The notes under the pieces are model-generated. The model worked only from the letters and a program-made list of their open reading frames with translations. It searched no databases and was not told the origin of the DNA. A DNA stretch of 64,000 nucleotides from Macrostomum lignano (lineage: Eukaryota), in NCBI GenBank assembly GCA_002269645.1, contig NIVC01002429.1, forward strand, positions 110,620 through 174,619, written 5' to 3'. Below, piece by piece: positions 29,898-31,786 of the stretch (positions are counted from its first letter, which is position 1; the number at the start of each line of letters is the position of its first letter). Made by a program: the position numbers and the translations under genes.

Positions 29898-31786
29898 ATG
29901 AAAGGCATCAGCGGTGCGACGCTGCTGGCTGGGGGAGTGACGCTCTGTGTGGCGCTCTGCCTGGCCGGTCAGGCCTGCGCTCAGGCCGGTGAGAATGGCG
30001 GCGAGCTTTGATCTTTGATTGCCGATTTATCAGTTAATTAAGCTCATTAGTGTATAGATAGATAGATAGATAGAAAGATAGATAGATAGATAGATAGATA
30101 GATAGATAGATAGATAGATAGATAGATAGATAGATAGATAGATAGATAGATAGATAGATAGATAGATAGATAGATAGATAGATAGATAGATAGATAGATA
30201 GATAGATAGATAGATAGATAGATAGATAGATAGATAGATAGATAGATAGATAGATAGATGGATAAAAAAGATAAATAGATAGATAGATAGATAGATAGAT
30301 AGATAGATGGATGGATAGATAGATAGATAGATAGATAGATAGATAGATAGATAGATAGATAGATAGATAGATAGATAGATAGATAGATAGATAGATAGAT
30401 AGATAGATAGATAGATAGATAGATAGATAGATAGATAGATAGATAGATAGATAGATAGATAGATAGATAGATAGATAGATAGATAGATAGATAGATAGAT
30501 AGATAGATAGATAGATAGATAGATAGATAGATAGATAGATAGATAGATAGATAGATAGATAGATAGATAGATAGATAGATAGATAGATAGATAGATAGAT
30601 AGATAGATAGATAGATAGATAGATAGATAGATAGATGGATAAAAAAGATAAATAGATAGATAGATAGATAGATAGATAGATAGATGGATGGATAGATAGA
30701 TAGATAGATAGATAGATAGATAGATAGATAGATAGATAGATAGATAGATAGATAGATAGATAGATAGATAGATAGATAGATAGATAGATAGATAGATAGA
30801 TAGATAGATAGATAGATAGATAGATAGATAGATAGATAGATAGATAGATAGATGGATAGATACATACATACATACATACATACATACATAGACTTGAGTG
30901 CTGAAATTAAAGTACAGCAGTTAAATTCCCCAAAAAATTTCAGACTGTCCAGACTCCGTAAACCTGAACTACTGCTACTCATGTAAGTTGCCAAACAATT
31001 CCATTCTCCCGTGCAGCATTTTTTGGCGCTGCATCCTGGAACTGCTCGAGACATATCCTGGTTTCCACTGGTCACCGAACTTTCAGGGAACGTGAAACGA
31101 GCTCTGGCCAGGCTGAGCAAGAGATTCGGCGGCGGCGGCGGCGGTGGTGGTAGCGCGATGAAAAACGTCAGCCCGCGGCTCCGCGACCGCGGAGCAGGGA
31201 AGGGCAGGCGAGGCCGACTTGACTGGCTGCGGCTGCAGCAGCTGGCGGCGCTGAAGCAGGTGAGTGTCTGCTGACTGCCGGGCCTGCCTGTCTCAGTGTC
31301 TGCCGGTCTCAGTGTCTGCCTGTCTGTCTGTCTGTCTGTCTGTCTGTCTGTCTGTCCAGCAGTCCAGCAGTCCAGCAGTCTACTGTTAGTTTGCGGGATT
31401 CCCAGAGCTGACAGCTACCAGTTTATTTACCTATTGGACAGCCATGCTGGACTTGCACTTCAGGGCACAATATTTCATTCAGAATCGAGGCGCACAGATA
31501 CGTTAAAATCGTCATCTGATTTGATTAGCTGGTTGGCTACTAGCATCACGAAAATTTTCGGTGTGAAAAATTCGAACCCGATGAAAAACACAAGCGGCTG
31601 GCCGCGCGTTCCATCTGGGAATCATTCGTGACTCAAGCTAATTCTTTGAGAAACGTTTAAGCAAATAGCAGAAAATTGACTTTCAACACCCCAAAGCAAC
31701 ACCTCCCTGTACGCTTTTTTATTGTTTTCCAGAGCGGGCATCCAGCCTCTGGGCGACATCATCGGAGACTGAATCGGGTGCCGTGA
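29898..31786 (+). CDS. Secreted neuropeptide-like precursor, 118 aa, 4 exons
   Basis: Exons 29898-29988 (signal peptide, G|gtgaga), 30944-30982 (T|gtaagt), 31087-31259 (CAG|gtgagt), 31733-31786 (TGA). Product: MKGISGATLLAGGVTLCVALCLAGQACAQA-DCPDSVNLNYCYSWNV-KR-ALARLS-KR-FGGG...RVP. Phases are consistent; the exon 2/3 junction has alternatives. Confidence 0.6.
30054..30890. repeat. (GATA)n microsatellite of ~0.8 kb followed by (CATA)n, in intron 1 of the precursor gene
   Basis: Directly visible; source of the SIYL ORFs. Confidence 0.98.

Follow-up and report, generated by a model that had tools for sequence, protein, structure and literature searches.

A small gene family of the flatworm Macrostomum lignano predicted to encode a disulfide-looped secreted peptide on a 39-nt micro-exon

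A stretch of 64,000 nucleotides from the genome of the flatworm Macrostomum lignano (contig NIVC01002429.1, positions 110,620 to 174,619; assembly GCA_002269645.1, Mlig_3_7), referred to here as the window, contains a four-exon gene whose product reads as a prohormone-like precursor. The gene is transcribed and belongs to a small family, whose members probably give rise to a disulfide-looped secreted peptide of 16-18 residues, likely a neuropeptide or peptide hormone; the family is apparently restricted to this lineage. The core of the predicted peptide is carried by a micro-exon which, together with the cleavage site encoded just beyond it, is conserved between paralogues that have otherwise diverged. 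An earlier reading of the window's sequence (the original prediction) had proposed an unannotated precursor with the spacing D-C-x8-C-x5-KR, either a highly divergent relative of elevenin or a new disulfide-looped neuropeptide. As far as sequence goes it is the second of these suggestions that stands, since the Cys pair, the ring, the tail (YSWNV in the window gene), the KR and the micro-exon are common to the paralogues.

Results

Gene structure and existing annotation

Splice-site reading of the window joins four exons into a coding sequence (CDS) of 357 nt, whose complete translation is a precursor of 118 aa, MKGISGATLLAGGVTLCVALCLAGQACAQADCPDSVNLNYCYSWNVKRALARLSKRFGGGGGGGGSAMKNVSPRLRDRGAGKGRRGRLDWLRLQQLAALKQSGHPASGRHHRRLNRVP, laid out in the order MKGISGATLLAGGVTLCVALCLAGQACAQA-DCPDSVNLNYCYSWNV-KR-ALARLS-KR-... 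(Table 1). The exon joins originally put forward, giving (QA)DCPDSVNLNYCYSWNV-KR-ALARLS-KR, are identical to those of the GenBank CDS derived from RNA-seq, and the GATA microsatellite said to separate the exons does occupy intron 1. The gene is not, as had been supposed, unannotated: it is deposited as BOX15_Mlig023273g2 (PAA57958.1 = P0007, 'hypothetical protein, partial'), a model with exactly the same CDS, including Thr15, and only its function lacks annotation. The annotated gene spans window 29718-31786, its CDS ending at 31786, and the PAA57958.1 locus is identical to the window base for base across 8069 bp. A second GenBank protein, of 178 aa ('hypothetical protein BOX15_Mlig023273g1, partial'), also includes all four exons. 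The GenBank annotation of Mlig_3_7 was made from RNA-seq (STAR, StringTie, TACO), a de novo transcriptome and TransDecoder (PMC5730564), and the junctions 29988>30944, 30982>31087 and 31259>31733 are therefore supported by transcripts. Of the other acceptors that the micro-exon might have used, that at 31017 breaks the frame; those at 30988 and 31051 keep it, yet would add residues between the ring and the KR. The acceptor in the annotated transcript is the one at 31087.

Table 1. Exons and other elements of the peptide gene, with its paralogues (coordinates are those of the window unless a locus is named).
Feature	Position	Strand or location	Description
Exon 1	29898-29988	+	91 nt; ATG at 29898; donor gtgaga; end phase 1; encodes the predicted signal peptide MKGISGATLLAGGVTLCVALCLAGQACAQA and the first base of the next codon
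Exon 2	30944-30982	+	39-nt micro-exon, phase 1/phase 1; tttcag before, donor gtaagt; encodes (D)CPDSVNLNYCYS(W), the complete predicted disulfide ring
Exon 3	31087-31259	+	ctttcag before; donor gtgagt; encodes (W)NV-KR-ALARLS-KR-FGGGGGGGGSAMKNVSPRLRDRGAGKGRRGRLDWLRLQQLAALKQ, comprising the C-terminal tail of the predicted peptide, the conserved KR and a divergent spacer
Exon 4	31733-31786	+	encodes SGHPASGRHHRRLNRVP, then TGA
5' untranslated region (UTR)	29718-29897	+	translated in GenBank as part of the CDS, lengthening the protein at its N-terminus ('partial')
Candidate poly(A) signal AATAAA	31948-31953	+	162 nt past the stop codon; sequence match only
(GATA/ATAG)n microsatellite	30054-30892	intron 1	839 bp, 209 copies, 96% matches
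Paralogue micro-exons	L003 14394-14432; L004 6800-6838; L005 7075-7113		39 nt, same phases
Gene A mature region			..AQA-DCPDSVNLNYCYSWNV-KR-ALARLSKR..
Gene B1 mature region			..PHA-VCTDGVNLHYCYSWNV-KR-ALELLQSRP..
Gene B2 mature region			..PHA-VCADGVNLHYCYAWNV-KR-ALLRSPP..

The N-terminus of P0007, NGCQANPERT..., is the in-frame translation from 29718, with an in-frame stop lying farther upstream, and the 60 additional N-terminal residues of this protein are translated 5' UTR. The same UTR holds a 60-codon upstream open reading frame (ORF) at 29719-29901 (+), MVVKQIRSGQKGAARLAIRT..., whose stop codon, TGA, shares bases with the main ATG (ATGA); its own ATG falls a single base within the gene's annotated 5' end, and may be absent from the mature mRNA. 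Upstream of the gene an 18-bp minisatellite (AAGCATCCCCCAGATAGC, 27891-29415, ~84 copies, 87% matches) stops ~300 bp before the annotated 5' end and produces several long spurious ORFs on both strands. Long artefactual ORFs arise likewise in intron 3, from (TGTC)n and (GTCCAGCA)n repeats at 31265-31380.

Gene Mlig023273 exists in three near-identical copies, in the window, in L001 and in L002, with 98-99% identity in unique sequence; the triplicated neighbourhood covers window 18785-43332 and lies on contigs NIVC01002429.1, NIVC01002259.1 and NIVC01002612.1. A three-copy neighbourhood is consistent with the duplicated chromosomes documented for the DV1 line (PMC5730564). The length of the intron-1 (GATA)n array varies from copy to copy: 839 bp in the window, where it has an internal higher-order duplication (ggataaaaaagataaataga... 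at ~30260 and ~30637), ~674 bp in L001 (10337-11010) and ~914 bp in L002 (9135-10048). The three copies differ at 2 of 357 CDS nt and by ~1% in the flanks, too little for a selection test on them to be informative.

Conservation among paralogues

With P0001 as query, HMMER was run in full against 1.84 billion representative proteins and provided one informative relative, P0004 (Mlig002632g1), also from M. lignano, and a follow-up search found Mlig031250g1 (P0006) and variants as well. We term Mlig023273 gene A, Mlig002632 gene B1 and Mlig031250 gene B2. B1 and B2 lie head-to-head ~8.5 kb apart on contig NIVC01001937.1 (L003 / L005), each beside protein-kinase genes, a genomic context unlike that of gene A. 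Their layout is that of gene A: four exons, of which the first encodes the predicted signal peptide and ends in phase 1 and the second is a 39-nt phase-1 micro-exon; exon 3 starts GG-AAY-GTG-AAR-CGN. Each gene has one micro-exon, no additional copies being present in the window or in the paralogue loci. The first exons of B1 and B2 encode an identical signal peptide, which points to an inverted duplication accompanied by exon-1 conversion; the length of intron 1 is 8.3 kb in B1 and ~0.7-0.9 kb in B2.

Genes A, B1 and B2 share a single block with sixteen invariant positions, C-x-D-x-V-N-L-x-Y-C-Y-x-W-N-V-K-R-A-L, of which the part encoded by exon 3, WNVKRAL, is the same in all three. The complete precursors are merely 31-34% identical, and the spacers can scarcely be aligned; ALARLS, the other KR-flanked segment of gene A, has no conserved counterpart in B1 and B2. 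The Cys pair and the KR are thus invariant throughout the family, and of the spacing first proposed the C-x8-C, the five-residue tail and the KR hold for the paralogues; the Asp does not, the residue preceding Cys1 being Asp in A and Val in B1 and B2. No part of the gene is better conserved than the micro-exon, and the introns that flank it are of unrelated sequence between the genes.

Codons were compared over the 21 that run from the residue preceding Cys1 through the residue following KRAL. Differences between A and B1 comprise 5 synonymous and 5 non-synonymous, between A and B2 6 synonymous and 6 non-synonymous, and between B1 and B2 7 synonymous and 3 non-synonymous; inside the invariant block itself the counts range over 5-7 synonymous and 2-5 non-synonymous. 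Synonymous change combined with constant amino acids, limited to the peptide and its cleavage site, is characteristic of a processed bioactive peptide and argues that the looped peptide is the selected product: the codon pattern indicates purifying selection centred on ring, tail and KR.

The predicted precursor and its processing

The N-terminus of the gene A precursor has the appearance of a signal peptide, Lys2 being followed by an 18-residue hydrophobic core (LLAGGVTLCVAL; 12-residue Kyte-Doolittle mean 2.35), and AxA motifs at residues 26-28 and 28-30 allow possible cleavage after residue 28 or 30; the same pattern is seen in B1 and B2. The cysteines have the spacing C32-x8-C41, and likewise C-x8-C in both paralogues. 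The KR, at Lys47-Arg48, has no Arg at P4, and no Gly precedes it; the peptide would therefore not be amidated. The predicted gene A peptide is acidic (isoelectric point (pI) ~4, net charge -2.3) and rich in aromatic residues.

The course of maturation that we propose begins with entry of the 118-aa pre-propeptide into the endoplasmic reticulum and removal of the signal peptide, presumably after Ala28 or Ala30. A disulfide between Cys32 and Cys41 would close a ring of eight intervening residues. Cleavage after Lys47-Arg48 would then fall to a PC1/3- or PC2-type prohormone convertase—rather than to an enzyme of the furin RxxR type, because the P4 Arg is absent—and a carboxypeptidase would remove the KR, yielding (pyro)QADCPDSVNLNYCYSWNV or DCPDSVNLNYCYSWNV: a signal peptide cut after Ala28 would expose a Gln able to cyclise at the new N-terminus, and a cut after Ala30 would give a 16-mer. 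The most likely role of such a peptide would be that of a secreted signal, a neuropeptide or peptide hormone, acting on a putative receptor, its expression presumably being neuronal or endocrine. In M. lignano the promoter of a PC2 homologue is broadly accessible across neural cell types and directs reporter expression in the entire nervous system (PMC12435804); machinery for processing of this kind therefore exists in the animal.

The micro-exon in older gene models

All six of the GenBank models derived from RNA-seq include the micro-exon (A g1, in two copies, A g2, B1 g1, B1 g2/g3 and B2). Among the older models, from ML2 and held in UniProt, P0002 and P0009 of gene A (..CAQAGNVKR..) and P0005 and P0011 of gene B1 (..APHAGNVKR..) are without it, and P0008 and P0012 retain it. 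With 39 nt and phase 1 on both sides, the exon could be skipped in frame, and skipping would therefore delete exactly the ring. The quality of the ML2 models bears on how this omission is to be read. P0008 (A0A1I8JEH5, 1623 aa) and P0009 (A0A1I8HV78, 2087 aa) are chimeras that read through non-coding, antisense and repeat ORFs, and the chimeric models take in window ~22464-23066 and 32936-33400; exon 3 is spliced in ML2 models to a downstream exon near 32920 (..AALKQ-RKEFQVLPLCRPCIGPQ..); and the names that UniProt attaches to them, 'ANK_REP_REGION', 'RING-type' and 'Integron gene cassette protein', are not credible. Because these models are poor, absence of the micro-exon is more likely an annotation artefact than real skipping.

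Comparison with elevenin

A typical elevenin (L11) precursor carries a non-amidated peptide directly behind its signal peptide, with a dibasic site coming next. The description of the Aplysia elevenin precursor agrees with this layout (PMC10175484). The Macrostomum precursors are built alike, with a single predicted peptide right after the signal peptide, C-x8-C, a tail of about five residues, a dibasic site, no amidation, and downstream a longer, poorly conserved C-terminal propeptide.

The residues themselves were compared by means of a position-specific scoring matrix (PSSM) made from 44 elevenin peptide rows (Fu et al. 2023, Supplementary Table 1), which reduce to 36 distinct x-x-C-x8-C-x5 cores; both Cys columns were omitted from the score. 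Macrostomum A, B1 and B2 score -31.7, -30.9 and -33.1 bits, against +14.8 to +43.5 bits (median 33.2) for true elevenins scored leave-one-out. Residue shuffles of the Macrostomum peptides score -28 +/- 7 bits and random background -27.5 +/- 7, and 63%-79% of the shuffles match or exceed the score of the observed peptides.

Position by position, elevenins have C-x8-C and a Gly two after Cys2 in 36/36, Arg after Cys2 in 34/36, Asp or Asn before Cys1 in 34/36 (Asp in 25/36) and Pro at ring position 7 in 30/36, and positions 3 and 5 of their ring are aromatic. The Macrostomum ring, P/T/A-D-S/G-V-N-L-N/H-Y, has S/G at 3, N at 5 and N/H at 7, the elevenin residues being absent; after Cys2 it has Tyr-Ser or Tyr-Ala in place of Arg-Gly; and before Cys1 the D/N of elevenin is matched in gene A but replaced in B1 and B2, hence is not conserved in the Macrostomum family. 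Elevenin activity requires the disulfide. In an alanine scan of Aplysia elevenin (RPRIDCTRFVFAPACRGVSA) substitution of G17, R16, P13 or D5 raises the half-maximal effective concentration (EC50) on all three receptors, and on apElevR2 takes it beyond measurement (PMC10175484). The Macrostomum peptides are without any non-Cys residue shown to be important for elevenin receptor activation. In charge, too, the peptides differ, that of gene A being acidic and that of Aplysia basic (net charge +2.7, pI 10.4).

By these comparisons the Macrostomum family is not detectably elevenin, having only the Cys spacing and the architecture in common with it. The original prediction had itself remarked that the spacing matched and the ring residues did not, a remark with which both the PSSM and the ring comparison agree; its suggestion of a highly divergent elevenin-like peptide is not supported, given scores at random level, the absence of the key residues and the opposite charge.

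Comparison with other looped peptides and with planarian prohormones

The C-x8-C ring is present also in melanin-concentrating hormone (MCH) and in GGNG/excitatory peptides, the latter adjoining the signal peptide. The tail of MCH reads ...CWQV; to our knowledge, MCH occurs in chordates only. The Macrostomum peptide resembles it in having a C-x8-C ring and a short tail that contains Trp and ends in Val (...CYSWNV), but the ring residues are unrelated, and the two peptides occupy opposite ends of their precursors, MCH the C-terminus, where a dibasic site precedes it, and the Macrostomum peptide the propeptide's N-terminal end. Pfam (Pro-MCH included) gave no match at E <= 10 for the three family members. 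Kinship with MCH is not supported, in view of the Pfam result and of the opposite placement of the peptide, and the gene is not, to judge from its sequence, a demonstrable MCH relative.

With allatostatin-C, vasotocin/'platytocin', CCAP and the GGNG/excitatory peptide-CCHamide group the Macrostomum family shares a secretory precursor, one predicted intramolecular disulfide and dibasic processing; the GGN(G) or amidation of excitatory peptides and the C-terminal precursor position of allatostatin-C are absent from it. Since C-x8-C is found in MCH and GGNG/excitatory peptides as well, and the other loops differ, the spacing alone is no proof of homology, and the likeness to elevenin and MCH would lie rather in a working mode, that of the disulfide-looped secreted peptide. 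The ring has 6 residues in allatostatin-C and 4 in vasotocin (PMC10175484).

Amidated linear peptides make up most of the catalogued planarian prohormones (Collins et al. 2010, Table S4). Like the Macrostomum precursors, those of the npp/spp/npy series are recognised by a signal peptide and by basic sites of cleavage, and a good many are specific to a lineage; the planarian families listed include no single-disulfide looped peptide, insulin/IGF being the sole classically Cys-containing one, and the supplementary sequence tables of planarian prohormones contain no 4-6-residue motif shared with the Macrostomum peptide (Collins et al. 2010).

Distribution

Apart from the relatives described above, little came out of the database searches. 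The HMMER scan matched an exon-skipped model, one paralogue and, weakly, P0003, a 4185-aa protein (E 3.5e-4, stretch 84-144). Word-index protein searches with the precursor and with P0004 returned M. lignano proteins only; a word-index search with a 45-residue family alignment returned nothing, family members included, and is uninformative. A profile search of the PDB gave one chance match (E 0.9). A degenerate DNA pattern of the micro-exon (~40 bits, with ~2 chance matches expected in the JGI metagenomes) picked up CRDFVNLYYCY on an AT-rich 1.3-kb contig, with no WNVKR after it; we take this match to be due to chance. The searchable literature yielded no YSWNV in a relevant context, no family motif and none of the gene IDs. 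No earlier description was found, though the main flatworm catalogues (Koziol et al. 2016, McVeigh et al. 2009) lay outside the search and one is possible.

Discussion

We consider a secreted looped peptide, likely a neuropeptide or peptide hormone, to be the probable product of this family. Several points weigh against that reading. The signal peptide was called by rules, not by SignalP. The gene IDs are associated with no expression or peptidomic data in the searchable papers or in two supplements. An acidic, non-amidated peptide is less typical of the catalogued flatworm neuropeptides, and the AlphaFold2 single-sequence model of P0004 is uninformative (mean predicted local distance difference test score, pLDDT, 47.5). 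No homologue outside M. lignano was found in HMMER (1.84 billion representatives), word-index, PDB or JGI metagenome searches; this absence is weak evidence, because ~20 conserved residues come close to the limit of detection in databases this large and the DNA collections searched do not hold flatworm genomes or transcriptomes. Finally, the conservation rests on paralogues within one genome, between which gene conversion is formally possible; recent conversion is the less likely because synonymous differences are present.

A convertase-processed peptide could also be made in a non-neuronal gland or reproductive tissue, as a seminal-fluid, adhesive-gland, pheromone-like or antimicrobial product. 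The sequence reveals secretion and processing, not cell type; multi-copy families of a single lineage are frequent among reproductive and defence peptides; and the peptide is acidic and non-amidated. We nevertheless think this origin rather unlikely, if deserving of serious attention: old paralogues have kept the mature peptide strongly conserved, contrary to the rapid evolution expected of reproductive and immune effectors, and a lone KR without P4 Arg would suit neuroendocrine convertases more than furin. Divergence of a flatworm elevenin orthologue down to the bare architecture, with signalling still by way of a G protein-coupled receptor (GPCR) of the elevenin-receptor type, would account for the common layout (peptide adjacent to the signal peptide, C-x8-C, five-residue tail, KR, no amidation Gly), for the Asp before Cys1 in gene A, as in most elevenins, and for the fact that the flatworm literature searched yielded no canonical flatworm elevenin. 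It is very improbable all the same, given that A, B1 and B2 score at shuffle level, that the Gly and Arg after Cys2, the ring Pro and the ring aromatics are all absent, and that the Aplysia scan ties a raised EC50 to the loss of G17, R16, P13 or D5 (PMC10175484); the Asp moreover gives way to Val in both paralogues, net charge is opposite (-2.3 vs +2.7), and a ring of eight residues occurs in unrelated families too, so that spacing is not diagnostic.

Two further explanations turn on inclusion of the micro-exon. That this is a flatworm-specific looped-peptide family whose core sits on an alternatively included 39-nt cassette, yielding a peptide-bearing or an in-frame peptide-less (..AQA-G-NVKR..) precursor, appears distinctly unlikely. 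The more radical proposal is that there is no functional peptide, only a fortuitous ORF in a lowly expressed or non-coding transcript from which the 39-nt exon is mostly skipped; it can call on the ML2/UniProt models of A and B1 that are without the micro-exon, and on the want of a Pfam match, a PDB match or a cross-species homologue. The micro-exon, however, is in every RNA-seq-derived GenBank model and surpasses the rest of the gene in conservation, with synonymous substitutions, and the ML2 models are visibly poor, with their chimeric products of 1623 and 2087 aa; of all the explanations considered we find this the hardest to credit.

M. lignano is a transgenic flatworm model whose peptidergic signalling is poorly catalogued. 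A family of looped, non-amidated peptides would add to it a class of ligand absent from the planarian prohormone lists (Collins et al. 2010), and would offer a concrete candidate for deorphanising flatworm-specific GPCRs. The apparent elevenin gap in flatworms is left unfilled by the peptide gene, because the link to elevenin consists in Cys spacing alone. That peptides encoded by a micro-exon are dropped in some models (ML2/UniProt) and retained in others is of relevance to neuropeptide mining in repeat-rich genomes.

Other features of the window

On the minus strand at 10103-19462 lies a gene whose product combines an N-terminal RIIa dimerisation domain (19007-19462, E 3e-13) with IQ motifs and resembles the sperm protein Sp17; an exon downstream encodes seven tandem repeats, each of ~55 aa and patterned as EEVDIDLEDPEVQAAAVKIQRGWSSHKSR. 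A G-patch/GPKOW gene lies downstream of the peptide gene at 38747-40953 (-), at the same position also in L001 and L002, with matches to G-patch_2 (E 1e-12) and to GPKOW_C (E 4e-10, below the Pfam cut-off). An ORF at 51221-51751 (+), in a GC-rich block of ~58% GC, encodes C2H2 zinc fingers (zf-H2C2_2, E 3e-15). Two adjacent long ORFs of 146 and 352 aa at 21803-23803 (-), in a block of 60% GC and with no Pfam match, are possibly a degenerate retroelement; portions of them are built into the chimeric ML2 models. Other long ORFs are artefacts of repeats, arising in a ~24-bp minisatellite at 42465-43855 and in long arrays at 57813-59204 and 59888-60683, which read as SVSQ and RQTD repeats.

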